This document shows positions 1 through 63,285 of a DNA stretch of 64,000 nucleotides, piece by piece. A program made the position numbers and the translations under genes. The notes beneath the pieces were generated by a model that ran no database searches, was not told the DNA's origin, and worked only from the letters and a program-made list of their open reading frames with translations. The stretch is from Bispira polyomma (taxonomy: Eukaryota), in the NCBI GenBank assembly GCA_965649765.1, contig OZ287757.1, forward strand, positions 53,754,001-53,818,000, written 5' to 3'. Positions within the stretch are counted from its first letter, which is position 1. Every line of letters starts with the position of its first letter.

Positions 1-65
1 GCGTCCAGTTTCTTCGTTAGCTCCTGTTCACGGTCACGCAGGTCTTGCTTGGCGCTCAACAGTTG
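1..65 (-). CDS. ENOX1: ENOX exon, partial (QLLSAKQDLRDREQELTKKLD)
   Basis: cacag acceptor at 66-70; phase 0 matches the preceding exon. Confidence 0.8.
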
Positions 66-3000
66 CTGTGACGACATGACAAATACACTTACACAAAACC
101 TGTTTACAAACAAGTTCACATCTAACTGCTTTTTACATCCAACCATTTACATCCTGTGGAGTAACTTGCTGCAGTAACTTAATCATTGATCTTTAATTAA
201 AAATTTTATCAACCCTTTTGATCCCGAGTAAAAACTGGGGGCCGCGGTGGCCTAGTGGTTAACAAGCATTGTGCTTCACAATCACTGGTTTCCACCTCTG
301 GGCGGCGTGAATTCGAATCCCGTTGATGCCTATGTAGGAAAGGTGGTAGTTCCTTACTGTGGGCCGCTGATTTCAGTACAGAACCTTGATCAACTGTATG
401 CAGTGTTTCCTCCAGCGTTTCCAACTACCCATCCCAATATAACCTAAACAGGTACTAGAGTGAACGTTAAATATCCTAATTCAAAACCCAAGTGAAAACT
501 ATTGCTGAGATCACAGACTGCTTCTGCGGCATTCAACACCAGACTCGCGTATCATTTCTTAATAAAAAAAGTCTGGTGTAATAACAATTTGATATTGCGA
601 GAAACTCTAGGAAAATAAAATCATATTTTTTGCTTTCCCACAGCCAAAGGTTGTGGAAATAATAAATACTCTCAACTGCTACCCGACGACATAGGGGTCA
701 AAAGGGTGCATTGCTATCTCTGTACAAATTGGACTGTATCTAATTTCTGTGACCCCTGTAGCCCTAACACTATACCTGTCTGAATGTATATAACACCTCT
801 CACCTTTTGAATGCCCTGTACAGTTTCCTGTCTAACTCCATACATGTCTCACTGTATATAACACCTCTCACCTTTTGCATGCCATGTACAGTTTACTGTC
901 TAACTCCATACATGTCTCACTATATATAACACCTCTCACCTTTTACTGTCTAACTCTATACATATCTCACTGTAATAACATCTCTCACCTTTTGAATGCC
1001 CTGTACAGTTTACTGTCTAACCCTATACATGTCTCACTGTATATAACACCTCCCACCCTTTGCCCTGTACAGTTTGCTGTCTAACTATATACATGTGTCA
1101 CTGTATATAACACCTCCCACCTTTTGCCCTGTACAGTTTACTGTCTAACTATATACATGTCTCACTGTATATAACACCTCCCACCTTTTGCCCTGTACAG
1201 TTTGCTGTCTAACCCTATACATGTCTCACTGTATATAACACCTCTCACCTTTTGACCTGTACAGTTTGCTGTTTAAAACCCTATACATATCTCAATGTAT
1301 ATAACACCTCTCACCTTTTGAATGCCCTGTACAGTTTACTGTCTAACCCTATACATGTCTCACTGTATATAACACCTCTCACCTTTTGCCCTGTACAGTT
1401 TGCTGTCTAACCCTATACATGTCTCACTGTATATAACACTTCCCACCTTTTTCCCTGTACAGTTTACTGTCTAACCCTATACAAGTCTCACTGTATATAA
1501 CACCTCCCACCTTTTGCCCTGTACAGTTTGCTGTCTAACCCTATACATGTCTCACTGTATATAACACCTCCCACCTTTTGCCCTGTACAGTTTGCTGTCT
1601 AACCCTATACATGTCTTACTGTATATAACACCTCCCACCTTTTGCCCTGTACCGTTTACTGTCTAACGATATACATGTCTTACTACATGACATTCTCAGT
1701 AACTTCTATCCATGTGAGGTTAAAATATTTGGGATGACACACAATTCCGCTGAGCATGCGTATCAATATGCCAAAGCTATACAGGCTGGAAAGGATAAAG
1801 TTGCAGAACTGATTCTTCAAGCCAGGTCAGCTTTTCAGGCGAAAGTTGAGGCCAGCTGTCTCCCATACAATCCAAATTGGTTAGAAAGGAAAGAAAAGGT
1901 GATGGAGAAAGTTATTCGTGCCAAAGCGAAATGCTGTCAGGACTTTTGTGATGTACTGATTGAAACAGATGGTGTTTTTGCTGAAGCTGTACCTGGTAAA
2001 CTCTTCTGGTCAACTGGTCTAAACAAAACGGATATTCTCACTGTGAAAAAAAGCTCTTGGCCAGGAAAAAATAAGCTGGGTAAGCTTCTCACAACCATAA
2101 AGGAAAGCATTGCAGATCGTAACAGTGATGAATAATGTTTCAGTATTGACTTATAACTGTCGAGGACTAAATGACAATGAAAAAAGGTGTAAACTATTTT
2201 TATGGTTAGTAAATCAAAACTTTGACTTAATATTTTTACAAGAAACATTTTGTACTAAACAAAGTGAAGCATACATTAAAGCAGGGTGGAAAGGTAATGT
2301 TGTCTTAGCTCCAACTGACTCTACTCACAGTAGGGGAGTTGGACTTCTAATCAAAAAATATTAGTAGTTATACAGATAAAGATGGTAGAATTCTTCTGAT
2401 AAACATTGAAATTGATGACAACATTCTTAGTGTTGTTTCAGTGTATGCTCCAAATCATGAAAATGATAGAGTTTTATTTTTTGACAAACTAAAACAGTGG
2501 ATACTGCAATATGCAGAAACTTTAGAAAATTTGATTATTGCTGGGGACTTTAATTGCTCTTTAAAACAATCAGATAGATTTCCACCTTCATGTAAAAATG
2601 ATAAAAGTGTGGAAAGTTAGAAAAAATTACTCACACACTGTGACTTAAATGATATTTGGTCCTTTTATAGGCCTAACGTACCAGGGTATACTTACTATAA
2701 TAAGAAATTAAAATGTTACAGCAGACTAGATTATATTTTAGTTAGTAGTAACACACAGTATGATGTTAAAAATATGGCAATTACAGGGCCAGTTAAAAAT
2801 CATGGGGTCATAGACCACTCTGGCCTTTTATTCAAGATAAATGCATCAAAAAGGGGTCCAGGGTACTGGAAGTTAAATAACAGTGTATTATTTGATAAGG
2901 AATATGTTCAATTAATAAACACTGTTATTAGTGACACTATGGTTGAGTATAATAACTTAAACTCTTGTCAATTAATATGGGAAATGGTTAAAGCAAATGT

Positions 3001-6000
3001 AAGAGAATTTTCTATAAAATACTGTAAAAAAAAGTCAAGATAAAGTCAGACATGCTAGATGAAATTCAACACAAAATAGATGATATTAATATATGCATCA
3101 CAAAACTGGAAACTAAAACATCTCTAAACCCAAAAGAATTAGAACAATTGCTGGATTATAAGTTACGCAAGGGACAACTAGAAAGTAACCAGATAAATCT
3201 GTATAATGAGAAAGCCAAGGGATATTCAATTTGTGCAAAAACTAAGTGGATTAAAGAAGGGGATATTCCATCAAAATATTTTTTGGGATTAGAAAAACAG
3301 CAACAATCCAATAATGTTATAAGAAAAATTCCAAGTACTGATAAGGTGTATACAAATAATAGAGATGTACTGAAAGAAATGGTAAAATTTTACGATAATT
3401 TATATGCGGAATCAAACATATCTCAGGAGTCAGTAAAAGAATATATTAATGCATCTACCCCTCCGAAAACTCTTGATGACAATGATAGAAACTTTTGTGA
3501 CAAGTCTTTAACAATAGAAAAAGTAAGACAAACTGGTAAGAGTTTAAAAAGAAACAAATCACCCGGAACTGATGGTTTAACATATGAATTTTACCAAATG
3601 TTTGGGACAAAATTAGAACCAATATATATTAAAATGTTAGAAAAAGTTTTCACAAAGGAATTTTACCTGACAGTATAAAAAAAGCTATTTTAAGCTTGAT
3701 TTTTAAAAAAGGTGACAGATGTCTACTTAAAAATTATCGACCAATTAGTTTAACAAATTGTGATTATAAAATTGTGACATTTGTCCTAGCTAAGCGTCTT
3801 CAAAAAGTTATTTCAAAACTATATATCACATGTCCAAAGTGGATATATAAAGAACAGATATATTGGATTTAACGCAAGATTAATTAATGATGTCATAGAA
3901 TATTGTGAGACCTTGGAAAAACCAGGAGCAACAATTTGCTTAGACTTTGAGAAAGCTTTTGACAAACTTAACTGGTATTTCATGTTTTGTTGTCTGGAAA
4001 AATTTGGATTTGGCAAAAATTTCATCAGTTGAATTAAAATTTTGTATAATCAACCATCTTTTTGTGTAAAAAATAATGGCTGGATTTCTATGGAAACACT
4101 TATGAGGAGAGGTGTAAGACAAGGCTGCGCAGTATCAGCATTACTATTTACTTTAGCTATAGAATTCTTGTCAATTGAAATTAGACAAAGTGATATAATA
4201 AGAGGAATTCGAATATTTGATAAAAGATCATGTTTGATTCAATATGCAGATGATATAACTTTAACATTAGAAGATGAAAACTCAATAATAAATGCACTAA
4301 AATTGTTAAAATTATTTTCTGCAGTGTCGGGTTTAAACACTAAATCTTAATAAGTGTGCAGAATTATGGCTTGTAACGATAAAAAACAACCCAGATGTCT
4401 TTGGAAAAATCAAATTTAGTAGAGGTCCCATAAAATGTCTAGGAGTATATATAGGAATTGATTAAGATTCATGTGAGAAAGCAAACTGGGATAAAAAAGT
4501 AAATCAAGTTGAAAAGTTATTATTAAACTAGAGTAAAAGAAAATTAACACTATATGGCAAATCCACTATTATAAATAACATTATTATTCCAAAATTGGTA
4601 TACAATTTGACAATACTGTATACACCAACTTATATAATTAAACAATTGGAGAATTTAATGTTTAATGTTTTCCTGTGGGGAAAACATCAAAAAGTCAAAA
4701 AGTATATAGTTATTGCAGAACATGAAAATGGAGGTTCAAATGTAACTGATATTCAATCCAAAATAAGAGCTCTGAAGATATTATGGATCCCAAAATTGTT
4801 AAACAATCCAAAAAGTAAAGTATTTAGGATTTTACAAATGTATCTTATATCAATTGGGATAGACATTAATATACTATTACAAATGAATTTCCGCAAAATT
4901 GCTGCTTTTGAAACTATTACAAAAATTCCAAAATTTTATCAAGAAATTTTTATTTCATTCAATAATTGTAAATTAATAAAACCAATAAATAATTTAAATA
5001 ACACTGAAATATTTTGTCAACCGATTTGGGGAAACGAATACTTTAAAGTTAAAAATAAACATCTGTACTACAAGAACTGGGTAGAAAGTGGTTTTATATA
5101 TGTTAAAGACCTTTTCGACCAAAGCGGTGCTCTTTTAAATGAGACACAAGTTCTGAGAAAATTAGAAGATAAATCAAACTGGATAGCAGAATTTTTTACA
5201 CTTAAAAATATCTTTGTAAAATTAGTATGTAAAAAGTATGACACTTTAAAATGCAAATATATTCAAAACAAAGTGTGTAAAAATGTTAGCTTCTGGGCTA
5301 ATGGTAAATTTAATCACCCAGATTCTTTAAAATCAAATGAAATATATAAAATATTGATAAAAAAGAAATATGAAAAACCCTATATAGAAAATATGTGGAA
5401 GAGAAAGTTAGAAATTGAAATAGACAGAAATAGATGGAAAAAAAATATACCTCATGAATTTTAAATCATTTAAATATAAAAAGTTTTCAGAATTTAAATT
5501 CAAAATACTTTACAACATATTAAGTTGTGGTGATAATTTGTGTAAGTGGAACCGAAATTTTACAGGCTTGTGTGCATATTGTAATCAATCCGAAAATATC
5601 TGCCAAGAGTAAAGCAGATCTGGTCGATTATTAGTAATTGTTTAAAAATTAAACGTATTGTTAAAGCACATAATTTTAGGAGTATCTGATGATAACTATG
5701 TAAATGAGAATAAGCTCTTTGTATAGTGCTAATAAGCTATGCCATTTATAGCACTTGGTGTAAATGTAACTTGAACAATATAGATTATAAGTTAGTATGT
5801 ATAAAAGATCATATAAAACAACAACTATTATTCTATGGTGAAGTATATCAAACTATACTAGCACATAACCCTACTAGAAGATCACATATGAAATGTATCA
5901 CAGAATGTATTGTATACCACCTGCATTAGTATGATTTTGTTGTCAATTGTAAAAAGAACTTGAGAAATGTTAGGGTGGACATAGTTTATATCAAGTAGTG

Positions 6001-9000
6001 CTGTAATATAAATCTTGTAACTTAAAGTTTTCAGGTAACATTAGTCTTTGTAATGGTTGAAAGTATTGTTTATATTACTCATACTGTGTATGAAACTGTT
6101 GTTACAAACCTGATGGAACGTTGCCACTCTCGCCTTCCCAGGTTTCGCCTATTATTGTTTGTGAAAAAAGAGTGAATAAAAAAAAAAAAAAAATAAATAA
6201 ATAAAAATGTCTTACTGCATATAACACCTCCACCTCATTTTTGAAGGCCTCAATTTCAAGTCTACCCCTGTGCATGTCTCGCTGTTTTTAACATCCCTCA
6301 CCTTTTGCCCTGTACCGTTCACTGTCTAACTCTATACAAGTCTCACTGTATATACCACCTCTCACCTTTTGCATGCCCTGTAGAGTTTGCTGTAGTAGCT
6401 TGACCTGCTTCCCTGCATCGTCTCCTGACGCCACAACCACCTGTTCTCTGGCCTCAGATTTCAGTAACTCCACCTCATTTTTGAAGGCCTCAATTTGGAA
6501 CTTAAGGCTGTTGTTTTCGTCCTTTAATTTCCGCCATTCCACGGCATCTACAGGCAAAGGATAAGGATACACATTACAAGATCAGGCGCTGTATTCACAA
6601 AGATTCTTAATTACACTTATTCCTAGAATCCACAAACATAAGATTCTAAGCACTTCAAATTGTTTAAGTGACTACGCTCCCTTTCTTTTGGAATTCATTA
6701 TCTCTACATGTGATATTTAGATCCAGTCCCTCGTTCATAAAGCACCCTAAAAAGTCACCTATATATGTACCAGCCTACCCTACATAAAACTTTCCTCGTA
6801 CAAGGTCACATCTCGGGGGGAATACTGACCCTTTTATGTTCCTCAATTTTGGATTTTTGCCCGACAACTTTTTTGAAGAAATCTAGGCCTCGCTAACCAG
6901 CTGCGGCGAAATATGATCAGAATGAAAATGTACACTACTACAAGACTAGCCTTTTTAGATCTAACTGCACCAGAGCCAATAAGCGAAACCCTTTAGAGAG
7001 ATTTGAGAACAAGTGTGTCCTTGGAGATCAGTATAAATTGTGTCCCTACCTGCGTGTTCAGTATAAAGTGTGTCCCTACCTGAGAGTTCAGTATAAAGTG
7101 TGTCCCTACCTACGTATTCAGTATAATGTGTGTCCCTATCTGCGTGTTCAGTATAAAGTGTGTCCCTACCTGAAAGTTCAGTATAAAGTGTGTCCATCCC
7201 TGAGAGTTCAGTATAAAGTGTGTCCCTACCTTGGAGATTAGTATAAGCTGTGTCCCTACCTGAGAGTTCAGTATAAAGTGTGTCTCTACCTGCGTGTTTA
7301 GTATAAAGTGTGTCCCTACCTGAGAGTTTAGTATAAAGTGTGTCCCTACCTTGGAGTTCAGTATAAAGTGTGTCCCTATCTGCATGTTTATTATAAAGTG
7401 TGTCCCTACCTACGTGTTCATTATAAAGTGTGTCCCTACCTGCGTGTTTAGTATAAAGTGTGTCCCTACCTGAGAGTTCAGTATAAAGTGTGTCCCTACC
7501 TGCGTGTTCAGTATAAAGTGTGTCCCTACCTACGTATTCATTATAAAGTGTGTCCCTACCTGCGTGTTTAGTATAAAGTGTGTCCCTACCTGAGAGTTCA
7601 GTATAAAGTGTGTCCCTACCTACGTATTCAGTATAATGTGTGTCCCTATCTGCGTGTTCAGTATAAAGTGTGTCCCTACCTGAAAGTTCAGTATAAAGTG
7701 TGTCCATCCCTGAGAGTTCAGTATAAAGTGTGTCCCTACCTTGGAGATTAGTATAAACTGTGTCCCTACCTGAGAGTTCAGTATAAAGTGTGTCTCTACC
7801 TGCGTGTTTAGTATAAAGTGTGTCCCTACCTGAGAGTTTAGTATAAAGTGTGTCCCTACCTTGGAGTTCAGTATAAAGTGTGTCCCTATCTGCATGTTCA
7901 TTATAAAGTGTGTCCCTACCTACGTGTTCATTATAAAGTGTGTCCCTACCTGCGTGTTTAGTATAAAGTGTGTCCCTACCTGAGAGTTCAGTATAAAGTG
8001 TGTCCCTACCTGCGTGTTCAGTATAAAGTGTGTCCCTACCTGCGTGTTAATTATAAAGTGTGTCCCTACCTGCGTGTTTAGTATAAAGTGTGTCCCTACC
8101 TGAGAGTTTAGTATAAAGTGTGTCCCTATCTGAGAGATCAGTATAAAGTGTGTCCCTACCTTGGAGATCAGTATAAAGTGTGTCCCTACCTTGGAGATCA
8201 GTATAAAGCATGTCCCTATCTTGGAGATCAGTATAAAGTATGTTCCTACCTGCGTGTTCAGTATAAAATGTGTCCCTACCTGAGACTTCAGTCCCTACCT
8301 GAGACTTCAGTGCCCCTCTTCTTCTTCTGTACAGGCTCTCCCTCCTCGTCACTCATCTCCATCTCATCTTCCTTACGCTCCTTCAGGAACTCCTGCTCCT
8401 CCTTCTGTCTGATCTCCTACAAACAACACACAAAACATTGAAACACATTGATACACTAAACACCCCCAGAATGTGATGCACCTCAGTATTACACTGAACA
8501 CCCCCACTAAATGGTGTACCCCAGTATTACACTAAACACCCCACTATATGGTGCACCCCACTATTACACTAAACACCCCAAAATATACTGCACCTCAGTA
8601 TTACACTGAACACCCCCAGTATATAGTGCACCCCAGTATTACACTAAACACTCCAAAATATAGTGCACCCCAGTATTACACTAAACACCCCACTATATGG
8701 TGCACCCCAATATTACACTGAACACCCCAAAATATAGTGCACCTCAGTATTACACTGAACACCCCAGTATATGGTGCACCCACTATTACACTTAACACCC
8801 CAGTATATGGTGCACCCCACTATTAAACTGAACACCCCAGTATATGGAGCACCTCAGTATTACACTGAACACCCCTCAGTATTACACTGAACACCCCCAG
8901 TATTATATTAACCCAGTATCCATAGACAGATGTCACACGTATCTCCCTATTCATATGGCGTAATAACTAGAGATTGCGCCATAACTGAATTCCCTGACAG

Positions 9001-12000
9001 ACATTACCTTTCACTTAACATCCCATTTAATAGAGTTCAGAAACTAGAAAATTGGGCCAACAAGAAAGAAGCTAGTGTCTTCCAAGACATACGTTACACC
9101 ATAAACCCCGTTATATAGTCTAATACCTACAAATTGCGCCCCCCACAAGATACACATCCATCCCAAGGCAGATTAGTCAAGATTCAAGAAAGAACCCACC
9201 CACCGTGTTCCATTGAGATGCTTACAAATTTATACCACACACACACACAGTATGAGTAAAATGTAGATTACTTGATGTAAATCAACTATTTGGACAGAAT
9301 AGTTGAACCCTCTTTTAAGCTAAAACCGCTACTTAAGCAGAATTTCCACTTGACATCATGATGGTTGATTTTTATTTCTGCCGTTATCTATCGACTACCT
9401 TTGAAAACAACTCTTTATTATATCCAGCTTGTATTGACTGCTATATATATATAAATCCAAATATACATATTTCTTCTACCTGTACTGCGTGAATGGTTTT
9501 TCCCTTGGTAGACATCTAGAAGGAAGGCCTTGCCGTTACTTAGAAGTCTCTTCACTATGCGTGAAAAGACCCCTGCTTTGTGGCGAGTCAGTGTCAGTGT
9601 GTGTCCATATACCTCCTTTTTTTTGTAGTTTTTTTTCCTGCCTTTTGGTATTGGGTTTTGTTTCCTGCCTCAGTACATATACTTACCCACTCCTAACAAG
9701 TGATGTCTTATCAAGGCAAAATTATACATACAGAAGTGGAAATTCACACAGGACAATCGAACGTTTGATATTAATATTATCTATTATTTTTATGTCAGAC
9801 TTTTTGGGCGCTTATTTTTTGTTGTAAAAAATTGTACGGCACAAAGAACACATCGCAGAGCCAAAAATCATCAATGATATATCCGAGGAGATATAATCAA
9901 ACTCACAGGTTTCCTCGGATATTGGACCTATTTTTATTCTTGACTTTTAATTTCGGAAAATTACAGATGAAAAGTAACATGTCAAAATAACGGCATGTTT
10001 TTATTGCAGTAGTATTCAATTTTGGCTATTTTTAAAATTCCGAACTTTTTTTTTACAATTTCAAGATTTTTCATGCGAATTTTCTTTTTCTAGGTTTTCC
10101 ATGAACTGTCGGAACCCTGGCCAAGATATAACGGCATACAGACTGACGGCCAAGCAAGGATCGTGAAAAGCCATTTCTACTCAACAGGCAAATAACCACT
10201 TCTGTTCGGGCATTTTTTTACCATACACAATATGACAGAGTCACTTTATATTTATAAATGAATGTTAAGAAGGAAAATAAATTGCCAAAATGAAATGTAA
10301 CTTACTCAGTATGTAAATTTTTTTCTCTCCAAAAAAAAAATCTAAAGTTTATTGGGCAAATTTTATATAATATTTTCCACTATCAAAGAAAGCAGCCAAT
10401 TCAGAATATGCTGTTACATACATATTAATATCACTACCACAGTAAGAAATCTAAAATTCGCCACTGTATCTAATATTTGCCACCTACAAAATGTTGTGTT
10501 TCTAGTAGAATTGCGGGTAATTTATTTGCTGAAATGGAGATTATTTTCACTATTTTGCCCCCTACTTATCCCCTAATTTCCACTTCTTTTTCCATCCAAC
10601 TTTTTTTTATTGATTTCGCTGACATTTTAGAGGACAGCTAATTTCAGATTTTGAGTATTTTAGATTCCTTACTCTACTATTTCAAAGTGCAATTACTAAA
10701 AAGAGTCGCAATGTTTCCCTGACTTACCACGGATATCTTACGCCACGAGTCTAGGTTCTTACGCTGAGCTTTGGTGAAATGATCCCAGGCTTTTTGTTTA
10801 GTCGCCGCCACAAATACTTTGTTGATCTGCTCCACTTCAAAGGGAACACAAGATCGGGGTGGTTACTATGGCGACTAGACTGTGATTGGTTGGGGTTGGT
10901 TTCTTCGTAGATACCAGAGATACCATACCATACTAGTTACTACTATACTTATGTACATTTGTTTTTTTCATCTGAAAAAGGTTGGAATTGCTTCTCTTCT
11001 TGTGGTAGGTGGTTTGGGCATCAAAGTATACTTTTCTCTAGAATGTGATAAACTCGAGGTCACTTTATTTAACCACCATTTTTAATTATCACCACCTTTT
11101 TCATTCATCGGCACAGTTATGGTACACACAGATTTTGTGAATGTTAAAAGCGTTTCATAATGGGTCGTAGTTATGGGGCAGATGAACCAAAATCTGATTT
11201 CAACGAGGAGATTTATTAGCATGTGCCATTTTACACAGTTATCTGTCCTGCAATTTGATTGGTTGAAGGCTATTAAGTATCCTTTATGTTGCTGTTTTTA
11301 TGGTATGAAATAGTGAACCAAAAGACAAACACAATGTCCTTTCACTAACTGCTTTGAACTTTTCGTTTTGGTCGCAACTCTAGCAAAAGATCATGTTTTT
11401 GTGGGTTTTTTTTAAGTGGTCGTTGAAGAGGTCTTGAAACTTGCAACAAATTTTAGTACCCAAATATGAACCTCCTGTGACAAGTAGTTTACAGACTAAT
11501 ATATTCCACAACACTTTAGGTTCAAGATTCCATGGTCAAAGTTCAAGGCAAGGGTCAGACCATGAGTCCATGACACTGCACGTAAAACAGTCTGTACTGC
11601 CCCTATGTAAGCAAAACTGGTACCATAACTGCAACAACAAATGTGCCCCATATTTGCCCAAAGAAGTAACTACTGCTGTCGAGTTTATCACATTTGCAAC
11701 AAATGGCAGTTTCAATTATAGATATATATACATTAGTCTTTCGATAGGAATTTGCTCTATTTAAAATGGCATTCAAAAAGAATATACCACAGCTAAATTT
11801 GGCTTTGTTCCAATACTTCTAGCCTAAATGTCTGGCGATGCATACAGCATTAACAGAAATGTGTTTGTTTTAATAATATGCTTATGGATGCCAAAAGATT
11901 GATACCAATATTGTTATATATGTTTACTAGTATTTACGTTTATATAACCGGTTCTTGATTTTTCGTTTCAGCTACTTTAAAATACACAGTGAAATGGAAA

Positions 12001-33188: not shown

Positions 33189-33190
33189 AT

Positions 33191-34748: not shown

Positions 34749-34945
34749 GGTCATTTTGTATGTTAACAACTGAAAAGTAAACTTGTAAAACTTAGATATT
34801 CACTTATGAATATTACTTGTATAACTTAAAATATAATGTTCCATAGAATGTTCTTACATATGTACACTGTATATTCACTTATGTTTTGTGTAATATGAAA
34901 TTTTGTAACCCCTTGGCTTCCAAAATTTTTCTTTAAGGGGGGAGG

Positions 34946-35696: not shown

Positions 35697-36199
35697 TTGG
35701 AGGAACTAATGACAAGTTATAAGGGTCTTTTAATGTCACTTGCAAGAAAAGCTGGAAATTTCTGTTCGAGTGGCTTATTGGGTTTAGTCAAGAAGAAGAA
35801 GTGTTATCCTATTTCTAGAAGTAGTAACTTCATCATCTCTGACAATAATGGCCTTGAACTGCTACAAACCTTCCTTCACTGGATGCATGGTTGATTGTCA
35901 AGTTGAACCAACAATTATACCACCAAATTACATTTTTAGATTGATACACTGTCGCATACTGCATGAGCTGCTTGTTGGATCATGTAATGTAACAGCATGT
36001 GAATGTTCCGACACTAAGATAGTCAAGGACCAAAAATACAACACCAACATTTGGATGTTAACTTCAATAAGAGTAAATATTTTCGTTATCTGTTAGTTCT
36101 GGTAAACACAATAGATCGCCTGTATGGTCAAACCAGAAACTATAACTTTCTCTGGTTGGCTTATTCAGAAGAATGCATTACTAAGTTGCATTTATGAGG

Positions 36200-39100: not shown

Positions 39101-39460
39101 ACAAGGTGGGCATGCTGGGGGTCTTTGACCGACACCTAGGTTCGACGTCACCTGAAGAATGTTCTTCAGCTGATGGGTTGCCAGCAGGCGAATCTGACCT
39201 TTTATGTCTTTCAGCGTTCAGGTGCCACATTTGCGTTTAACAACAATGTAAATGTGCAGGATATTTAACGTCATGGCACCTGCATGGACGTTGAATTGCA
39301 TGTGGAGGTATATTATTGATTCTGCTCAGGCTGGCTTCCAGGTTGTTGATTCTTTCAGGAAAGCCCTACATCTCAACTCCTAGGCGTTTCTGGGTTTGGT
39401 GGTCTGGCTCTTCTTTGATCAGCTGAAAAAAATAATATGTACAACATTAATGTTTAATAA
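36200..39460 (+). mobile_element. Decayed DIRS/Ngaro-like tyrosine-recombinase retrotransposon
   Basis: gag-like part with CKFYQNGSCKFPNSH; RT remnant FGYQNSSTIFQ...(Y)IDDFL near 37380-37500; DIRS-type RNase H LEMLN...CDNQAVVSVL...NKIADLLS at 38040-38280; YR remnant (LCP, KWS, SGATFAF, HGT, WRYI) at about 38430-39380. Boundaries approximate. Confidence 0.78.
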
Positions 39461-41260: not shown

Positions 41261-41425
41261 ATGGCTGACACGTTGCAAAGTAAACTTCAAACACCAAGAA
41301 CTTTGCGGGAAAAGTTGACAGCATGGGACGCAAAGACAGGTCCCAAGGCTCCTCTTACCGACTCTCAGAAGGATTCTTTCATGGAGCTGACAACACTTAC
41401 TGCCAATAAAGCTCTCCCAATTGAG
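41261..41425 (+). CDS. COG3: COG3 exon 1
   Basis: MADTLQSK...[18 protein letters not shown]...LPIE|gtttgg. Confidence 0.9.
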
Positions 41426-53400: not shown

Positions 53401-56400
53401 TTTCATCCAGTGTGTTAAGTCCTCTATTTGAGGCATTGTAATTCATTTTTGAATGACTGAGTGGCCAATTGACTGATTTATTGATTAATCGACCGACTCA
53501 AAATGGTTTGGTAGCTTTCAGTTGTTCGGTCACAGTGTCTGATATTCTTTAATAGTTGGCTAACTAATGGTTTTGCAATTGATTAGTACATGGTTCAATA
53601 TCCAAGCAGCCAGTGAAAATATAAGTGTATCAGGATATACTAGGTATAAAGAGTCTTTTATTAATGCTACTTTTGTAGATAAGATGTAGTTAGTTTCTAA
53701 ATCCTTTGCATTTAGGAGTATGTTTGACTATGTTCACTTTGAATATGAGAAGCCTCTTACTTGTAATATGCCAAGGTTTATGTATCTATCCATGTTTTTT
53801 TTGTGTTTGTTTTTATAGGTGGAGATGATCGAAGAACATGTCCATAATAGTCGTAAGTATCAAGTTCTTCAAGTATAACCTATTTATCTAGGTCATATGA
53901 AAGGTACACATGGTATTGTGTTAAAAACGAAAGATTCTGGAAACCACTAGACGGGGCACTGTCATATTGGATATACATGTAGGGCACTGTCATATTGGAT
54001 GTAATGTATGAATACAAAACGCTAAATGCTAATGTGGTTTTATTGCCGTGTTTCTGTTTTTAGCCTGCGCTGTGTCCTGTGAATTCCAGAATTTAGCCTC
54101 AAAAATATAAGAATAAAAGTACATCTTCATAAGAGGAACAGACAAACATGAATAACAAATTTAAAAAAAATTCCAGGTAAAGAATATTTTCAGTTTGAGC
54201 ATTTTTGGCTGTGTGTTATTTGTACTGTAAGTACGTGTGTACTCTATAAGTACGCGTGTACTTTCAGCTTATGATAAGTGTGTGTACTTTGTTGTAAGTA
54301 CATGTGTAGTACCTGAGTGATTTTGAGGGGGTGTTTGTGTACTCTAAGTACGTGTGTACTCTATAGGTATGTGTGTACTCTATAAGTATGTGTATACTCT
54401 ATAAGTACATGTGTACTTTCAGCTGATCACCCAAGTGCCTTTGAGGTAGTGTTTGTAGGCTTTAAGTACATGTGTACTATATAAGTATGTGTGTACTCTT
54501 ATAAGTATGTGCATATTTTCAGCTGATCACCCAAGTGCCTTTGAGGTGGTGTTTGTACTCTAGGTATGTGTGTACTCTATAAGTACATGTGTACTTTCAT
54601 CTGATCACCTGACTGCCTTTGAGGTGGTGTTTGTGTACTGCAGTCTGTGTGTACTCTATAAGTATGTGTGTACTTTCAGCTGATCACCTTAGTGCCGTTA
54701 AGGTGGGGGGCTGCGGTGGCCTAGTGGTTAGCAAGCATTGCGTTTCACAATCACTGGTCTCTCACCTCTGGGCGGCGTGAGTTCGAATCCCGTTGATGCC
54801 TATGTGGGAAAGGTGGTAGTTCCTTACTGTAGGCCGCTGGTTTCTCTGCAGAACCTTGACCGACTGTATGCAGTGTTTCCTCCAGCGTTTCCAACTACCC
54901 GTCCCAATATAACCTACTAAGAGGTACTAGAGTGGACGTAAAATATCCAAATCCGTTAAGGTGGTTTTTGTTTACTGTAAGTATGTGTGTACTCTATAAG
55001 TATGTGTGTACTTTCAGCTGATCACCTGAGTGCCTTTGAGGTGGTGTGTTCTCAGATGTTGGAAGACGTACAGGAGAGACTCGTGTACAGAACACACATC
55101 TACATCAGACAGGAAATACTCGGCTACAACCCGGCACAGGGAGACCTCGCCTACCCCGACAAACTCATCATGATGGAGGTACGGAGGTGAAATGTTACTA
55201 TAGCAACAGTGGGTATTTCGGTGGGACAGTTTCTATAGAAACAGTGGGTAATTGGGTGAAACTGTTACCATAGGAACAGTTGATAATTAGGTGAAACAGT
55301 TACCGTAGAAACAGTTGGTAATCAGAAGTAAAATAGTTACCATAGCAACAGTTGGTAATCAGGGGTGAAACAGTGACCATACCAACAGTGGGTAATTTAG
55401 TAAAGCGGTTACCATACCAACTGTTGGTAATTGGGTGAAACGGTTACCATAGCAACAGTTGTTAATTAGGTGAAACGGTTACTATAGCAAAAGTTGGTTA
55501 TTGGGTGAAACGGTTACCATAGCGACAGTTGGTAATTACGTGAAACGGTTACAATAGGAACAGTTGGTAATTGGGTGAAACGGTTACTATAGTAACAGAA
55601 GGTGATAGAAGGTGAAACGGTTACAAAAGGGACAGTCTGTAATTGGGTGACAGATACCATAGCAACAGTTGGTAATTGGGGGATGAAATGGTTACCATAG
55701 AAATGGTGGTTAATATGGGGTGGAACGGTTACTATAAAAACAGTTGCTAATAGGGGCAAAAGGTAGATGAAATAGAAATGTAATGCAATAGCTTTTGTGC
55801 TGCTGAATACACTGTAAGCAATCCCCAAACAGACATCCGGAGCCAAATTTGAAAGGAAAAAATTCTTCATTCTATTAATGAAATAAATTTTTTCCCTTGA
55901 TGAAATCAACAAGTTTTGATGTTGGATTTTTTTTTCAGATAAGAACCTAGATTTATTTGGTTGTATTTTCTCACTAAAATAGTTGCTAAAATCGCCCCAC
56001 CTTCATACTCTGTTCTGTGTCTATTGCAATAGAAATAGTATCATGAAATATTACCAAAAATTTAACGATTTTATATAACTAGCAAGTGGGAATTTAGACT
56101 TAAAAGTAACATTTAAATTTTTTTTTTAATAAATCACTAAGCTCCCTTCTGATCTCTATTTCTATATTACAGTAGACTGTAAAAGTAGAACCAGTGTAAG
56201 TCAAACGTAAGTATAAGTGGCACCAGTTTTGAGGTCCCAACATCATAAAATGCTGCATTTTTGTAGGCACAAGTGGAAGTTAGCCATAACTTAGAACCAA
56301 ATCCTGTGGAAATTTGAGGTTCTAGTTATACACAGTGTAATGTGTTTGTTTGTTTTATTGTTTCCCACACAGAGTATAGCGGCCAGTCTCAAATCCAGCC

Positions 56401-59400
56401 CCACGTCTACTAGTACACCTTACAAACTGTCGCGTATTGACTCTGCCGCCAGCGTCTCTTCACAAGCCAGCCTAGAGGTTGAACAGATCAATAACCACGC
56501 CAAGGAAGCCCTCCCCTTCTCCTCCACGGAGACCTCAGAAAACGGTGGCGCCACCCTCAATGGCATGAGCGAAGAGAAACATGCGATGCAGAATGGACGA
56601 CAGCCGGGCTCTTTTGTCACCGTCAATCTGTCGGCAGCGAATGGTATGTAGTAGGTTTATTATCTTCAAAGTGACTCGGGACACGTACAGTCTAGCACAC
56701 ACTAATCGCAAATGTCTAACTGTCTGGAATCGGAGTGCCTAAGCATTTAGTATGAACCAATATGTAAAAAATAGCAAATAAGTTGGGGGGCTATTGGAAA
56801 TTAAGAGGAAAACATATGTTACATGCCATTTTATAAACAAAACACCCAAATATCTAACAGCTTCTAAAATATTAAACGACACTTGCTGTGGATTTGTTAT
56901 GCTTTGTTGTGCTTTCACATTTTTAAAATTCCTAGGATGTGATGTCCTATTTTTCTGTACCAAATGCAGGCCACCCTTAAATATAAACCGGTATTATGTG
57001 ACCTAAGCTGTTGAAAGCGACGTAAAACCCAACTAAATTTAAATTCTCACTGACACCTCTACATACTCCGAAGAGACACATACACACACTCACTCCAGGG
57101 TTGTAAATAGTGAGTGGAATTGGTCTGTATCTTGCAAGTCGATTAATTGTTTAATTGTCCGACCGATCATCAACCTGTAATCGATTATTGACATAAGTAT
57201 ATTGTTTGAATTATTAAGTTACCCATCCTGCCATCCCAGCCGAATATAGTGTGATCGGGTAACAATTTGATCAAATTCAAAGGTTCGACATTTAGTATCA
57301 ACCGCTAAACTATACTACTTCCGGTAAACATGGCGGTAAACGAAAACAAATACAAAAGTGACAAAAATTGCTTTATTTGACTTAAAAACTATCTTAAATC
57401 TTATGAAAACATCAAAATATCTATTAGTTGAAGTAAGGAACTTTGCTGTGTTTTTGGTGGGTAATGATCGATTTTCTGATGATCTTTACTGATCGACATC
57501 TATGGGTCAATAGACCGACGAACGCTCAGATATTCGTCGAATCGTCCACTCACTAGATAACCACAGACACACACTGACACAGCCTGTGATGTCCTATTTG
57601 ATGTGTGTATTTTTGTGTTCACCAGACGCGGGCCCCGGTGGTAACATGCCCATGTCTCCCGCTGACCTCCACGGGATGTGGTACCCCACTGTCAGAAGGA
57701 CCTTGGTGTGTCTGTCTAAACTCTACCGATGTATAGATGTGAGTAGCACCAGTATTTACAATAATGTGTGTAGTGTTAGAAAGGTTACTTCGTTCCTCTC
57801 TGTCAAATTGTATTTATGTATGGATATTTCTCATTTTGTGCTATATCATCAAAATTTAATTTTTTTATAGCAAGAAATATACATGTAATGGAATTGATGC
57901 AAAATAGTATTTAGTAAAAGCATTATTTGAGGAAATTTTAGTTGAAAGGGTAATGATACAATAGCATTGTAAAAACTATTATTTGTAAAACTTGTACTGT
58001 TTGCTGTTATGTGAAATAAACAAATAAAAAAGTTTACACTTAATTTTCATCACTGACAGAATTTTTTTGACCCCCGAACACTCCGACTTTGCTTGTTATT
58101 TTCTATTTACTTATTTTCACAACAGAGGGCCACGTTCCAAGGTCTGTCTCAAGAGACGCTAACCATGTGTATCACTTCGCTGAACAAAGCCGCAGATCTC
58201 ATCAAGAAGAGCAAGTCCTCTATGGACGGACAGCTCTTCCTAATTAAGCACCTGTTGATTTTAAGGGAGCAGATCGCACCGTTCAATGTCGAGTTTGCGG
58301 TCAAAGAAATGGGATTGGATTTTAGTAAAATTAAAGGTGAGATACAAATGCTTTTTTAACTAGTTTGCACATTGCGCAAGTTTATAGCAGGGGTGGAAAA
58401 GATGGAGAACATCTACAAAATGTGTCGACAAGCAAATCTCGAAACTGGTAGGGAGCTTTGGTCTGAAATTTTCATGAATGATGGAGTTGAACCTCTTGTG
58501 CTTACAGATTTATTTGGGGATCGATTCTAATCATGAATCTGCGAATATTTGTGTTTTCAAATTCCGCCATGTTGTTTACTTCTAAGAACCATTGCTGTTG
58601 TTTTTTATCTCTGAGATATCTTCGGTTATTTCTGTTAAAGCACGAACATAGAACTGGCCAATCTGAAACAGGATGGTATGATGTCATTTCCGAGATAGCT
58701 TTGCCAATTGTCGGAATATCACAAATGAGTAAATATCCTTGTATATACTCATCATGCTTTAAATGTATGGTGACTGGTTTGGAGGTGAAAGGCTCGAGTT
58801 CGCGTCCTGCTTGCAGATATTTGAAAAAAAAACAAATTTTTTTGCTGGTACTGCCTTTGGTTATAATTCGGCCGCCAGTTTTAAATCGGCCACCATACAA
58901 TAAATGTGTCATAACTTTAATTAGATTTTTTGGCCTAACAATACTGTACTTCCTCGAAGATTGGTATTGTGATTGTTTTACTTGAATCCTATAGTCCATT
59001 TTGTACCAAGATTTTGAATAATTACCATTTAAAATGTGACGGCCGATTTAAAACTGGCGGCCGAATTATAACCACAGGCAGTACATCTTTTATTTTGGGA
59101 AACGTTTCAAGATATAATAAACTGTAATAACTGTGTCCATAGACGTGCACAGTGAAGGTTATTTCTTGTTTTTCTAATACTTGCATATTCATGGTTATAT
59201 TTTACAAATTATGGGGATTCTTATCTCCAATAAACAGCCTCGTTTTGAAGTATGACGTCAGTTTCAAATACCGTCCGAACACCACCAAAGCAGAACGTTG
59301 CCCAGATCGCCACCCCAAAACGCCACCTTGATTAAGAACTTATTCACCTATATTAAATATGGCGAGAAAGTGTTTTTTTATAACAGTCAAGTACTGATGT

Positions 59401-62400
59401 ATATTTAATTCGTTTTCCTTGCGTAAAACCCAGTTGAATTTAAATTTCACTCAGATTCTGGGTTTCATTTGCATTTCTTGGACCAAACTTGAGTGCACAT
59501 ATTTTTGTGACATGTGGGAGCTCTTCTGGTGGTCAAAAAGTCATACTATCAAATATATTTGGATAATAGAAAAAATTTTGGACCATATCAAGTTCTACTA
59601 CTGTATAAGTCTTTAGTAGAACCTCCAATATCTGAACGTGTTGGGAGAGCAAGATTTTGTTCTGATACCAGAATGTTCGTGAAATACGAAAATCAAAATT
59701 TTAGACAGTATAGCTGTGTTCATAAAATTCAATTTGTATTCAGATAACACATATTTTGGTTAATACAGGCAGGCCTCACACCTGCTGTATCTCCTATGTG
59801 TTTGTAAAATTATGTCCTGGTTTGCTCAAAAGCAAGGTATTGTGGCAGTACTTGGGTTTATATTGAACATCAACTTGTTCTTACATTTTTATCTGGAACA
59901 ATTACGTGCACAACATTGTTTGGTGACACTGCAAAAATGATAATATAAGAATTTTGGCTAACTGAGGACCACCTTTTTTGGAAGAGAGATGAGCGTATAT
60001 CAAGACAATGGAGGTCACATAGGAAGGCTTCATTCAGTTATCAATACTTGTTTTTATTTTTAATAAGTGAGTCTAGCAAGGCTAGTCTCACTAATTAATG
60101 GGATGGTGCAGATTTGGTGTTGCGACAGCATTTTCGTGAAATCGGCCCGAAAATCGAACTTGATACTTGCCAGGTATCCTTTTTTAATTCTAGGGATAAT
60201 GCAGTCGATTGGTTTTCTTAATTAAAAACTATAATGACAGTTTTAAAAGACTGACCTAGGTTGACATGGATTTGACCTTTATAGTGACATATTTCATTTT
60301 CTAGGCTTATTCCTATATATACATATTTGTTTTCTATGTAATTTCCAATTTTCTTTCTATTCAGATGCTGCGTTTGGTTTACTCAATTCACGTACCAAAG
60401 TGTTCTCCCTCAATAGAACCAATGCTTTACTACAGTTCTTGTTAGAGGTAAGTTTAGACTCTGGGGGAAAACATTGACCCCTTTCTAACCCCCTAGGTTG
60501 TCAGCTAGGGGAGAACAGTGACACCTTTCTAACACCCTAGAGGGGCCATGGTGGCCTACTGGTTAGCAAGCATTGCGCTTCACAATCACTGGTCTCTCAC
60601 CTCTGGGATCGGCTGGCGTGCGTTTGACTTACATCGATGTCCACGTGGGAAAGGTGGTAGTTCCTTACTGTGTGTCACTGGTTTCAGTGCAGAATCTTGA
60701 CCAACTTTATGCAGTGTTTCCTTCAGCGTTTCTAACTACCCGTCCCAATATAACCTAAACAGGTACTAGAGTAGACGTTAAATATCCAAATTCAAAAAAA
60801 AAAAAAAATTCTAAACCCCTAGGTTGTGAGCTAGCAGTACACTGCATTTGTTACTCCCATAACCAGTTTTAGGGTAATGCAAGTCAAAGTCAAGGTATAG
60901 CATTTAAATCATTCAAAAAACGTCTTTGAAAAAGATTGAAAGCAATATAGTCCACCAAGCTTTGAAAAAGAAAATGTTATTCTAAAATTTGTTGTAAAGC
61001 AATGTTAATTTATTAAAACCATGTTAAATTATGGGGCAATGCGCGGGGGGGGGGGGGGGGGGGGGGGACAAGTTTCACAACTAAAACTTGAAATATAACA
61101 TGTACTTCCTGAATATAATGAAATATATCAAAATATCTGAGAGTATTACTAGTATTACTAGGTGTAAACACAATGTAACAATGATGCTGATCTGTGAGAT
61201 GACTTGTATAGACAGAGACAGACTCACTGCATCAAACAATGATGTAAAGTGTAATTAGCTTGATGTGTGCCAACAATAACTAGGAAGCAGGGGGGATTTA
61301 GTATTTGTGTATTAGTCCTCCTGTGTCTCAACAGTACACATGACAGTTGTTTGTGTTCGTCTTAGGCGTCCTGTGTGTGTCTTAGAATTTTGATTTTTTT
61401 TCCTCATTCATTTGCAGGGTACACCTCAAATGACCGAAACCTTCATCGACTCTAAAAAAGACGTGGATTCTCAGTTAAAGCGAGCGTGTGAGGATTTTAT
61501 CTCAAGTGTAACAGATCAGTTGATTGGACCACTCAAGATGTTTATGTCAAAGGTGGGTGGAATGAGCCAATCCTCTGCTGTCTGTTTTCATCACGGCATA
61601 ATTTTTTTTCTTTTATGTAGGATAAAATAACAGATCTTATATTAGTAAAATAATATTATCGTCAGGGTCCTTCTTACTTAGTTCCCTGAGTCCTCTCTGA
61701 TTAGAATCGCATGGTTCACAATTACTGGCCTCTCACCATTTGAGATTCAAAACCTATTCGTTCCTTCATGAGGTGAAAGCTTGTTGAGCAGTTTCTGTAG
61801 GTCAGTGGTTTACAGTGGGCTTTAGCACTAGTTTCTTTCACGATTTATTCTGGCCATCATAATAAATATAACCTAAGTTGTTAAAAGCGACGTAAAAACT
61901 CAACTAAATTCCAACCAATAGCCACATGGCATGGGTTTGATGGGGGAAACCTGACGTCGTAAAAACGTCAATTTTTGGTGTGGTGTGACCTATCATGAAG
62001 TATTTGGTGTTCAAACTTTCTGACTAGATATACTAACAACAACAAAACTAACATGATCCTTTCAAACAAAAGAAAAGTTATAGCTTAAAAACCTTTTTTA
62101 CAATTGTATTTTTTTTTAAAAACAATACTACAATACATAAAGAAGTGATTACTGGCTCTAAGAGTCAACACTTTTTACATATTTATCATATCATACAGAT
62201 ATGCACACAATTTGCTTTGACAAAAAAGACTTAAAACAATAAAAATAGTAGTAGAGGGCTCGCATTCATAAAATAATACTCGATTCAAAGCCATACTCAA
62301 CTCGTATCTAGATTCTCTATAACTTTGATTATAGTAAATATGTCTGATTATAGTAAATATGTCTAAAATCTGACACCTTAGACCGCCCTGCTAGTTTTGG

Positions 62401-62624
62401 ACCTATATTTTTATCAGACGACCACACTATTGAGGATGCGGGAGGACCCCAGCGCCCCTCAAGTCACCCTACGTCAACAACCGTTTGCTAGTCCAGAAAA
62501 GGTACAGGAAGTCGTGGCCGAGACCTACCGGAACTTGAAAAATAAGAAGGGCGACGTACAGAGGAGTATGGCCTTGTATCTGGCAAATAAAGACACTGAG
62601 TTCATCTTGTTTAAACCTATTAAA
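41261..62624 (+). CDS. COG3: Conserved oligomeric Golgi complex subunit 3 (Sec34 family), multi-exon gene, 3' end outside window
   Basis: join(41261..41425,43432..43557,43886..43947,44315..44480,44890..44964,45957..46049,46562..46690,49240..49358,50755..50881,51641..51732,53123..53228,53819..53852,55018..55178,56373..56643,57626..57738,58126..58336,60365..60447,61418..61552,62418..62624). All GT-AG with a continuous frame. Motifs [84 protein letters not shown]. Confidence 0.97.
43432..43557 (+). CDS. COG3: COG3 exon 2
   Basis: ttgcag|LPLDD...VENSQQ|gtagga. Confidence 0.88.
43886..43947 (+). CDS. COG3: COG3 exon 3
   Basis: ttttag|[12 protein letters not shown]...|gtaaat. Confidence 0.9.
44315..44480 (+). 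CDS. COG3: COG3 exon 4
   Basis: [22 protein letters not shown]|gtgggt. Confidence 0.93.
44553..44777 (-). mobile_element. tRNA-derived SINE, family B (family A head, different body and tail)
   Basis: Head resembles family A; tail gacctaagctgttgaaagcgacgtaaaa also at about 56995-57044 and 61865-61912. Confidence 0.7.
44890..44964 (+). CDS. COG3: COG3 exon 5
   Basis: [25 protein letters not shown]|gtaagt. Confidence 0.92.
45957..46049 (+). CDS. COG3: COG3 exon 6
   Basis: [31 protein letters not shown]|gtaaga. Confidence 0.93.
46414..46630 (+). repeat. Two degenerate upstream copies of the COG3 exon 7 acceptor and 5' end
   Basis: ttttag|cctcagtatc... at 46421 and cctcaatattgagagtcccaggtttataccagt...gaggctgtaacc at 46461. 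Confidence 0.8.
46562..46690 (+). CDS. COG3: COG3 exon 7
   Basis: [19 protein letters not shown]...|gtaagg. Confidence 0.92.
49240..49358 (+). CDS. COG3: COG3 exon 8
   Basis: [26 protein letters not shown]...|gtaagt. Confidence 0.93.
49334..49532 (+). repeat. About 4 copies (40-54 bp) spanning the COG3 exon 8 donor
   Basis: aggcaagacttaccagtagtaacga|gtaagtagagccaaggtcatttcaaggt and variants. Confidence 0.85.
49744..50765 (+). repeat. 22-28-bp minisatellite, 29 copies of the COG3 exon 9 acceptor
   Basis: tctgtctctatgttctag|GTACACCCAG; the last copy is the functional acceptor. Confidence 0.95.
50110..50376 (+). mobile_element. tRNA-derived SINE, family A, inside the COG3 exon-9 acceptor array
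   Basis: A and B boxes, A-tail, TSD ttctaggtacaccca. Confidence 0.9.
50755..50881 (+). CDS. COG3: COG3 exon 9
   Basis: [16 protein letters not shown]...RDHCAL|gtgagt; the acceptor is the last unit of a tandem array. Confidence 0.92.
51490..51655 (+). repeat. Three 60-61-bp copies of the COG3 exon 10 acceptor
   Basis: ttctattcttatttcag|GTAYRTAGYGGATGT with AG ending at 51519, 51580 and 51640. Confidence 0.88.
51641..51732 (+). CDS. COG3: COG3 exon 10
   Basis: [23 protein letters not shown]...|gtgagt. Confidence 0.93.
53123..53228 (+). CDS. COG3: COG3 exon 11
   Basis: [26 protein letters not shown]|gtagga. Confidence 0.94.
53819..53852 (+). CDS. COG3: COG3 exon 12 (34 nt)
   Basis: ttatag|[11 protein letters not shown]|gtaagt. 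Confidence 0.88.
54186..55050 (+). repeat. ~80-100-bp array copying the COG3 exon 13 acceptor, with a nested 19-bp subrepeat
   Basis: aagtatgtgtgtactttcag|CTGATCACCTGAGTGCCTTTGAGGTGGTGT-like copies at about 54422, 54522, 54600, 54679 and 55017 (real). Confidence 0.9.
54705..54952 (+). mobile_element. tRNA-derived SINE, family A, inside the COG3 exon-13 acceptor array
   Basis: Near-identical to the 50110 copy; TSD ccgttaaggt(gg). Confidence 0.9.
55018..55178 (+). CDS. COG3: COG3 exon 13
   Basis: [41 protein letters not shown]|gtacgg. Confidence 0.95.
55186..55750. repeat. ~31-bp minisatellite starting 8 nt after the COG3 exon 13 donor
   Basis: gtgaaacggttaccatagcaacagttggtaattgg, about 18 copies. 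Confidence 0.88.
56373..56643 (+). CDS. COG3: COG3 exon 14, Ser/Thr-rich variable linker
   Basis: acacag|SIAASLK...AANG|gtatgt; phase fits both neighbours. Confidence 0.8.
57626..57738 (+). CDS. COG3: COG3 exon 15
   Basis: [28 protein letters not shown]|gtgagt. Confidence 0.95.
58126..58336 (+). CDS. COG3: COG3 exon 16
   Basis: [10 protein letters not shown]...[20 protein letters not shown]...DFSKIK|gtgaga. Confidence 0.95.
58851..59081. mobile_element. Tc1/mariner-like MITE
   Basis: Near-perfect ~40-bp TIR ctgcct.tggttataattcggccgccagttttaaatcggcc, flanked by TA. Confidence 0.75.
60365..60447 (+). CDS. COG3: COG3 exon 17
   Basis: DAAFGLL...NALLQFLLE|gtaagt. Confidence 0.92.
60541..60808 (+). 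mobile_element. tRNA-derived SINE, family A
   Basis: A-tail; TSD ttctaacaccctag/ttctaaacccctag; lies in the second copy of a ~45-bp tandem duplication. Confidence 0.88.
61418..61552 (+). CDS. COG3: COG3 exon 18
   Basis: [28 protein letters not shown]...|gtgggt. Confidence 0.93.
61700..61912 (+). mobile_element. Older SINE copy, family B
   Basis: Degenerate head ttcacaattactggcctctcacc and family B tail. Confidence 0.6.
62418..62624 (+). CDS. COG3: COG3 exon 19
   Basis: [12 protein letters not shown]...[21 protein letters not shown]|gtaagt. Confidence 0.93.
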
Positions 62625-63285
62625 GTAAGTAGTTATTAACAGAGGAGTATGGCCTTGTACCTGGCAAATAAAGACACCGAGTTCATCTTGTTTAAACCTA
62701 TTACAGTAAGTAGTTATTAACAGAGGAATATAGCCTTGTACCTGGCGAATAAAGACACCGAGTTCATCTTGTTTAAACCTATTAAAGTAAGTAGTTATTA
62801 ACAGAGGAGTATGGCCTTGTACCTGGCGAATAAAGACACCGAGTTCATCTTGTTTAAACCTATTAAAGTAAGTAGTTATTAACAGAGGAGTATGGCCTTG
62901 TACCTGGCAAATAAAGACACAGAGTTCATCTTGTTTAAACCTATTAAAGTAAGTAGTTATTAACAGAGGAGTATGGCCTTGTACCTGGCAAATAAAGACA
63001 CAGAGTTCATCTTGTTTAAACCTATTAAAGTAAGTAGTTATTAACTGAGGATTATGGTTTTGTACCTGGCAAATAAAGACACCAAGTTCATCTTGTTTAA
63101 ACCTATTAAAGTAGGTAGTTATTAACAGAGGAGTATGGCCTTGTACCTGGCGAATAAAGATACAGAGTTCATCTTGTTTAAACCTATTAAAGTAAGTAGT
63201 TATTAACAGAGAAGTATGGCCTTGTACCTGGCGAATAAAGACACCTAATTCATCTTGTTTAAACCTATTAAAGTAAGTAGTTACT
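62558..63285 (+). repeat. Nine 81-bp copies spanning the COG3 exon 19 donor
   Basis: Units start at 62558, 62639, 62720, 62801, 62882, 62963, 63044, 63125 and 63206; 67 nt of exon plus gtaagtagttatta. Confidence 0.96.

Follow-up and report, generated by a model that had tools for sequence, protein, structure and literature searches.

Tandem repeats across exon-intron boundaries have been described in amphioxus as 'mirage' minisatellites (PMC3087553, PMC3902484). These two reports place the repeats in the genes Adh3, the globins BflGb6 and BflGb9, troponin C, and PGBD5, record that the repeats vary in length and are somatically unstable while splicing proceeds normally, and describe the origin of mirages as unclear. 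In human F7, the first unit of a 37 bp VNTR in IVS7 spans the exon-intron boundary; the identical pseudo-donors after it are silent, and the upstream donor is preferred over them (PMC1557585). Duplicated AG|GT sites are also the basis of the Rogers model of intron gain, discussed in PMC3087553, with a case in PMC4974935, and paired nicks give rise to tandem duplications (PMC5730883). The arrays analysed here, from a 64,000-nucleotide stretch of the genome of the annelid Bispira polyomma (the window), are mirage-type minisatellites. The class, which the earlier note on this DNA had supposed might be undescribed, was already published, from single lancelet genes; neither a genome-wide mirage count nor an annelid report was found in the literature searched.

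Two genes, identified from best hits, were rebuilt in the window. The ENOX gene lies on the reverse strand (1..25619) and continues beyond the window edge; 10 of its coding exons were traced, at 25464-25619, 22571-22663, 20652-20969, 19557-19763, 17733-17966, 16784-17014, 10728-10834, 8299-8416, 6366-6547, and 1-65. The COG3 gene lies on the forward strand (41261..62624), with 19 coding exons traced and the final exon outside the traced part. The rebuilt models contain 56 junctions, every one GT-AG and with agreeing phases. The homology search of the spliced models was made for each exon separately; the COG3 exons align in order along the homologue P0020, and nearly all COG3 intron positions are also present in other animals. 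The ENOX model is based on Pfam hits to RRM_1 and ENOX1 and on the phase chain rather than on a full-length homologue; two exon candidates, at 15321 and 12709, were discarded for phase mismatch.

Direct copies straddling the boundary were found at 11 of the 56 junctions, on the intron side only, and these seeded junctions are exactly those named in the earlier note, which had counted at least 11. In the ENOX gene, on the reverse strand, the array at donor 6366 (764..6393) holds about 15 copies of a 64-68 bp unit, 28 nt of which are exonic; at 1690-6206 a 4.5 kb LINE, marked by a target-site duplication, interrupts it. A 30 bp unit is repeated 42 times at donor 8299 (7024..8311), where an additional perfect 19 bp duplication spans the donor. 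The array at donor 17733 (17289..17828) is diverged, with a unit of about 116 bp and up to 96 exon nt, and that at donor 19557 (18297..19578) has about 28 copies of 28 bp, interrupted by a 507 bp insert (18412-18918) with an 8 bp target-site duplication. Donor 25464 (25376..25482) has one degenerate copy at a distance of 79 nt, matching 19 exon and 9 intron nt at 93%. The unit at 17733 thus exceeds the 19-100 bp given in the earlier note, and the copy at 25464 does not form a clean array.

The COG3 arrays, on the forward strand, comprise copies with a period of 101 bp and 77 exon nt at acceptor 46562 (46416..46638), copies with a period of 92 bp and 25 exon nt at donor 49358 (49334..49532), and about 28 copies of 24-28 bp at acceptor 50755 (49745..50773), the last interrupted at 50111-50376 by a SINE that carries a target-site duplication. 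Three 61 bp copies at acceptor 51641 (51481..51655) are spanned by a single read contig with zero differences. The array of 79-100 bp units at acceptor 55018 (54221..55047) is interrupted by a SINE (54708-54952), and that at donor 62624 (62558..63304) has nine copies of 81 bp with 67 exon nt at 95% identity, read-through running into a stop. Two further arrays, which the earlier note had placed within about 30 nt of a junction, adjoin junctions and do not cross them: a 37 bp array near ENOX acceptor 8416 (8452..8905, reverse strand), which starts 4-36 nt inside the intron depending on the method, and an array of 16 copies of 35 bp (55185..55755, forward strand), which begins 5-7 nt past COG3 donor 55178. 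An assembly artefact can be ruled out because the copies in the window differ from one another by 2-27%, four arrays are interrupted by transposons carrying target-site duplications, and short-read contigs from one study, probably of the source sample, are identical letter for letter to three arrays, whole or in part; the first two of these arguments had been anticipated.

The seeding of junctions is real and exceeds chance, in agreement with the earlier judgement that random placement is unlikely. Random intron points in the window score at 5.0-5.3% (p=1.3e-4 for 11 of 56), and a second detector gave 9 of 56 junctions against a null of 2.0-2.6%. A genome sample of 209 predicted junctions from 83 other loci on 11 of 14 large contigs, drawn from three gene families and leaving out tissue-specific and germline-silent genes, yielded 37 seeds (18%) compared with 6.0% at random points (p=4e-9) and 3.5% at +300 to +500 nt. 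About one fifth of exon-intron boundaries are copied, from once to more than 40 times, into the adjoining intron. Both boundary types are seeded, donors (31/134) more often than acceptors (17/133; p=0.04), and each unit derives from an exon end of one gene, with units differing from array to array. The density of array starts is 1.3-2.2 per kb over the final 120 nt of exons, drops to 0.6-0.75 over the initial 60 nt of introns, and is 0.15-0.37 further in, which makes exon ends 5-8 times denser than deep introns; no array was confined to an exon. That arrays always extend into the intron, as had also been noted, is correct for all copies, but it is rejected as evidence of targeting on logical grounds, because a junction-spanning duplication in a working gene always leaves its extras in the intron.

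The extra copies look like neutral decoys, codon constraint being limited to the live exon copy at the array edge. Exon-to-decoy divergence at codon positions 1, 2, and 3 is 0.080, 0.049, and 0.146, and 0.11-0.18 in the intron parts, a pattern expected with a constrained live copy and drifting decoys. GT or AG is intact in the nearest decoy in 42 of 47 arrays, and use of that decoy would lead to a frameshift or stop in 41 of 43 cases, which does not differ from simulation (p=0.17). No frame bias (multiples of three in 12 of 47) and no selection against open in-frame decoys were found, and divergence shows no gradient with distance from the exon (mean rho 0.09, negative in 6 of 15), a check that the earlier note had proposed.

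These data are best explained, at about an even level of confidence, by exon-biased duplication, selection for straddling copies, minisatellite growth, and neutral decoys. In this lineage, short direct tandem duplications of about 20-150 bp with little microhomology would arise several-fold more often with an end in or next to an exon than far inside introns, the simplest route being the filling-in, during repair, of staggered nicks or breaks within exons; young two-copy duplications have an overlap of 0-2 nt in 22 of 31 cases. Wholly exonic duplications would be purged, while those crossing a junction would restore the exon and leave the extra copy in the intron, the outcome seen at seeded junctions. 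Slippage or unequal exchange, which are known minisatellite behaviour, could then raise the copy number to tens, and transposons would accumulate. The exon-proximal site would be chosen, as in human F7, with decoy misuse nearly always causing a frameshift or stop, and the decoys would be functionless and decay neutrally. Against this explanation, no signal that could give the reason for the exon preference was found: seeds and breakpoints show no association with CpG (a methylation proxy), TpG, or AG|GT, no breakpoint motif was found, and exon GC does not differ between seeded and unseeded junctions.

Of the two mechanisms put forward in the earlier note, a bias in origin agrees slightly better with the data than array persistence anchored on a master copy, and neither is proven. 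Persistence, which we consider rather unlikely, would involve an even origin, with exon-anchored arrays outlasting others, one copy being frozen by selection and deletions near the exon being purged. The codon pattern suits it, since one frozen copy halves the divergence rate, but this should give at most about a 2-fold effect compared with the 5-8-fold seen. Array starts at intron positions 0-60 nt are 2-3 times enriched, the arrays concerned being longer and more diverged, and two seeded junctions are common to Branchiostoma floridae and B. lanceolatum; both observations fit persistence. Young isolated duplications straddle a junction in 1 of 31 cases (0.9 expected if uniform), a result also in its favour, albeit of low power because many of them lie within older arrays. 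Biased origin is nevertheless somewhat favoured because straddling and free arrays have equal identity, span, and period (p 0.3-0.6) and because most other animals lack enrichment. The free arrays, described earlier as small, measure 130-265 bp in the window and are as long as straddling ones in the wider sample. Universal retention should act everywhere, yet COG3 in nine other animals has 9 seeds at 370 junctions (0-7% each), where the nulls of these animals would give about 14, in a comparison of one gene with nulls that include simple repeats. Look-ups of COG3 for Ptychodera and Lineus found nothing.

It is unlikely that a lesion tied to splicing, in which the duplications start at germline splice sites through polymerase pausing, R-loops, or conflict between transcription and replication, accounts for the arrays. 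Seed frequency has its maximum 0 to +25 nt from the junction and declines to the background level around +200 nt, but this width equals the unit length and is also predicted by exon-wide origin with selection. The excess of donors is consistent with such a lesion, and a perfect 29 nt stretch of exon interior within one array suggests template switching; splice-site strength, in turn, is not associated with seeding. Spliced (exon-exon) footprints in the window and inverted copies (0 of 147 exons) are absent, which argues against this lesion; on the same grounds cDNA templating and retro-copied exon fragments were rejected.

Repair between divergent alleles of a highly polymorphic species, starting in conserved exons and slipping where homology ends, is very unlikely. 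Amphioxus is highly polymorphic, and such repair would account both for its sharing of the phenomenon and for the patchy animal distribution, but read contigs of 642-1154 bp cross exons and introns uninterrupted and identical, so that this stretch shows no heterozygosity in the sampled animals, in one region and one study. That decoys are retained because they serve, for example, regulated unproductive splicing is most improbable: 33 of 47 arrays contain a decoy scoring at least as high as the live site and GT/AG divergence (0.04) is slightly below that of other positions, but the deficit amounts to 3.5 weighted changes where about 6 were expected, and could be affected by ascertainment, the units are unrelated and show no frame bias, and the junctions seeded vary between annelids.

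A broader reading, possible but held tentatively, is that a germline process particular to certain lineages directs short duplications to junctions or exon edges, reaches about one fifth of junctions, and acts independently in the annelid and amphioxus, forming a general and overlooked class tolerated through strict exon-proximal choice, acceptors included. In B. floridae COG3, 10 of 44 junctions are seeded, comparable to the Bispira polyomma genome; the idea that the same junctions are seeded in both was rejected (3 of 6 shared, p=0.12). Mirages are extended here from a handful of lancelet genes to a common feature of an annelid genome in another phylum. Extrapolated from three gene families and the window, seeding of about 18% of junctions implies many thousands of cases. 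Such a number would suffice to distinguish a bias in origin from persistence, to study how, among up to 28 near-identical acceptors, the final one is selected by the spliceosome, and to search for introns that are now being gained. Gene prediction is also affected, as translated search mistook decoys for exons 32 times in the 83 loci.

Compared with intron gain under the Rogers model, the arrays likewise involve short tandem duplications that copy splice signals. They differ, as the earlier note had held, in amplifying existing junctions: COG3 intron positions are ancestral, being common to eight other animals, AG|GT is not enriched at seeds, and no new intron is formed. Human F7 IVS7 resembles the annelid arrays in its boundary-spanning first unit followed by pseudo-donor copies, but it is one locus with donors only, whereas one third of the Bispira polyomma cases are acceptors, at which the last copy must be used. 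The closest counterparts are the amphioxus mirages, with boundary-spanning tandem units at donors and acceptors, unit lengths from tens of bp up to about 160 bp, copies 81-100% identical, and decoy GT/AG often intact; their sequence is particular to each locus, as is probably that of the annelid units. The annelid arrays are set apart by their phylum, by arrays of up to 42 copies, and by a count that takes in many genes, gives about 18% of junctions, and is set against a null.

Tandem copies straddling the exon-intron boundary are present at 11 of the 56 junctions traced in ENOX and COG3, on the intron side every time, when the 60 nt on either side of each junction are searched at a sensitive setting. 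An identical rule applied to random intron points of the window is positive in 5.0–5.3% of cases (p=1.3e-4), and random placement is thus unlikely, as an earlier note had judged; the seeded junctions are exactly the 11 that it named. Its unit range of 19–100 bp stands except for the upper limit, which is about 116 bp. ENOX donor 25464 is indeed seeded, but by one worn copy, and the arrays at 8452 and 55185 adjoin a junction without crossing it, as described. The intronic position of the spare copies holds at 11 of 11 junctions, but is true by construction and uninformative on targeting, because a junction-spanning unit duplicated in a working gene leaves its spares in the intron. Unlike direction, the frequency of seeding bears on targeting. 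Small duplications at 51732–51772 and ~60470–60830, starting at or just past COG3 donors 51732 and 60447, contain no exon sequence.

The window is part of contig 10 in an assembly of 1.035 Gb and 75 contigs, and the two genes are divergently oriented, ENOX (Pfam RRM_1 and ENOX1) on the minus strand and COG3 (COG3_N and COG3_C) on the plus strand. Their 10 and 19 coding exons, respectively, were searched singly rather than as a joined protein, and all 56 junctions are GT-AG and continuous in phase. Taken in sequence, the COG3 exons cover a full-length homologue, and nearly all COG3 intron positions are common to eight other animals. The top named protein matches in the exon-by-exon comparison are Paralvinella, Capitella, and Ridgeia, which makes an annelid source very likely. 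Between the genes lie LTR-type retroelement remains with integrase domains PF17921 and PF00665 (~30400–35700) and a second decayed element with no Pfam match (~36400–39500). In two lancelets, a limpet, and a hemichordate, COG3 has a rhomboid gene as its head-to-head neighbour; in the window, transposon remains and ENOX, not a rhomboid gene, are found upstream of COG3.

The arrays are real DNA, because their copies have diverged from one another, four of them carry insertions flanked by target-site duplications, and read contigs agree with the assembly; the assembly artefact that the earlier note had considered is not borne out. The read contigs, which come from runs of one study, probably the source material, and so do not represent independent individuals, are identical to the window over 50985–52021, most of 49150–49660, and 54069–54446. 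The four insertions are a LINE, two SINEs, and a 507 bp insert. The decayed LINE (1689–6206, plus strand), with endonuclease and reverse transcriptase, lies inside the array at ENOX donor 6366; a NADAR domain (PF08719, E 2e-20) is encoded in its first 148 codons, immediately ahead of the endonuclease frame. Short inverted ends mark the 507 bp insert (18412–18918), which is flanked by an 8 bp target-site duplication, splits the array at ENOX donor 19557, and is probably a non-autonomous DNA transposon. A SINE-like repeat of ~250 bp with a poly-A end, very high in copy number in the reads, occurs at 239–483, 15501–15734, 50111–50376, 54708–54952, and 60543–60794, two of these five copies being within junction arrays. 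In addition, a perfect 29 nt copy of the ENOX exon interior 6468–6496 is found in a junction array at 6228–6256, the single clear case among 147 exons.

The enrichment extends beyond the window. Ninety 3.2 kb loci, each with a myosin, chaperonin, or kinesin exon at its centre, were sampled, and seven of them were dropped as duplicates, pseudogenes, or intronless genes; the sample, 0.35 Mb in size, represents mostly housekeeping genes rather than a genome-wide count. Junctions were predicted from open frames and splice-site matrices, decoys (spare intronic copies of a splice site) mistaken for exons being taken out; the predictor is 99.8% exact on window exons, which overlap its training set. 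Seeding affects 37 of the 209 sampled junctions (17.7%); the figure for random deep-intron points is 6.0% (p=4e-9), and that for points 300–500 nt into the intron is 3.5%. This result supports the existence and enrichment of the feature as first observed. Each of the three families has seeded junctions (18/77, 6/49, and 13/85), and the sample is spread over 11 of 14 large contigs. Exon-proximal array starts number 1.3–2.2 per kb in the last 120 nt of exons, 0.6–0.75 in the first 60 nt of the intron, and 0.15–0.37 deeper. Recent segmental copies were also encountered: myosin loci that are almost the same in sequence lie on three contigs, and one chaperonin exon has a duplicate containing a stop.

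Of 47 arrays, 42 have GT or AG retained in the nearest copy and 33 contain a decoy scoring at least as high as the live site. Exon-decoy divergence at codon positions 1–3 is 0.080, 0.049, and 0.146, and 0.11–0.18 in the intron part, a pattern expected with a live exon under selection and a drifting decoy. This shows that the exon-proximal copy, on which the earlier note had rested the conserved protein, is constrained, and that decoys are neutral-looking. No identity gradient with distance from the exon was found along the arrays. Seeding is more frequent at donors (23%) than at acceptors (13%; p=0.04, one among several tests). Use of the nearest decoy would shift the frame or introduce a stop in 41 of 43 cases, the same as for simulated duplications. 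At the human F7 donor array, a 37 bp repeat, proximal site choice was shown to give tolerance (PMC1557585), and the window arrays may be tolerated likewise.

The source of the junction bias could, at about even odds, be an exon-biased origin followed by selective filtering: duplications would arise preferentially at exons, possibly by fill-in repair of staggered nicks (model basis, PMC5730883), and selection would then filter them. Of the 31 young two-copy duplications, too few for showing origin bias, 22 overlap by 0–2 nt, which agrees more with such repair than with slippage involving long direct repeats. Copies occur in direct orientation only; searches for spliced copies and for a sequence correlate of seeding found none. 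It is unlikely that persistence rather than biased origin explains the enrichment, since freezing one copy gives only about two-fold, straddling and free arrays have diverged equally, and enrichment is absent from most of the other animals. Because persistence alone seems too weak, biased exon origin is ranked above it and above splicing-coupled lesions as initiators of the duplications, which we consider still less probable.

In an identical test on COG3, one gene per species, Branchiostoma floridae has 10 of 44 junctions seeded (null 6%, p=3.5e-4), followed by B. lanceolatum (3/44), Glandiceps and Ridgeia (2/42 each), and Owenia and Paralvinella (1/42 each), and none is seeded in Capitella, Liolophura, Patella, or Tachypleus. 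For COG3, straddling arrays are therefore present at low frequency in several phyla and at high frequency in Bispira polyomma and B. floridae. Of the six COG3 seeds in the window, three are also seeded in B. floridae, an overlap that does not reach significance (p=0.12). Both Branchiostoma species are seeded at residues 442, which corresponds to window acceptor 55018, and 556, with differing unit lengths; another seeded junction is common to B. lanceolatum and Glandiceps.

The class had been thought undescribed, but is already published: according to two papers, the name mirages was given to boundary-spanning tandem repeats of amphioxus Adh3, and such repeats were later found in the globin, troponin C, and PGBD5 genes (PMC3087553, PMC3902484). 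The globin paper regarded them as possibly general in cephalochordates and of unclear origin (PMC3087553). A literature search covering few subscription journals returned no genome-wide mirage count and no annelid report. The window arrays share with amphioxus mirages units that hold both exon and intron sequence, seeding of donors as well as acceptors, intronic spare copies, and frequent retention of GT or AG; their units come from the exon ends of single genes, differ from array to array, and may be locus-specific. Collectively, they are a known kind of feature rather than a new class; the phylum is new, and the frequency measured is high. Bispira polyomma is well suited to the study of how mirages originate.
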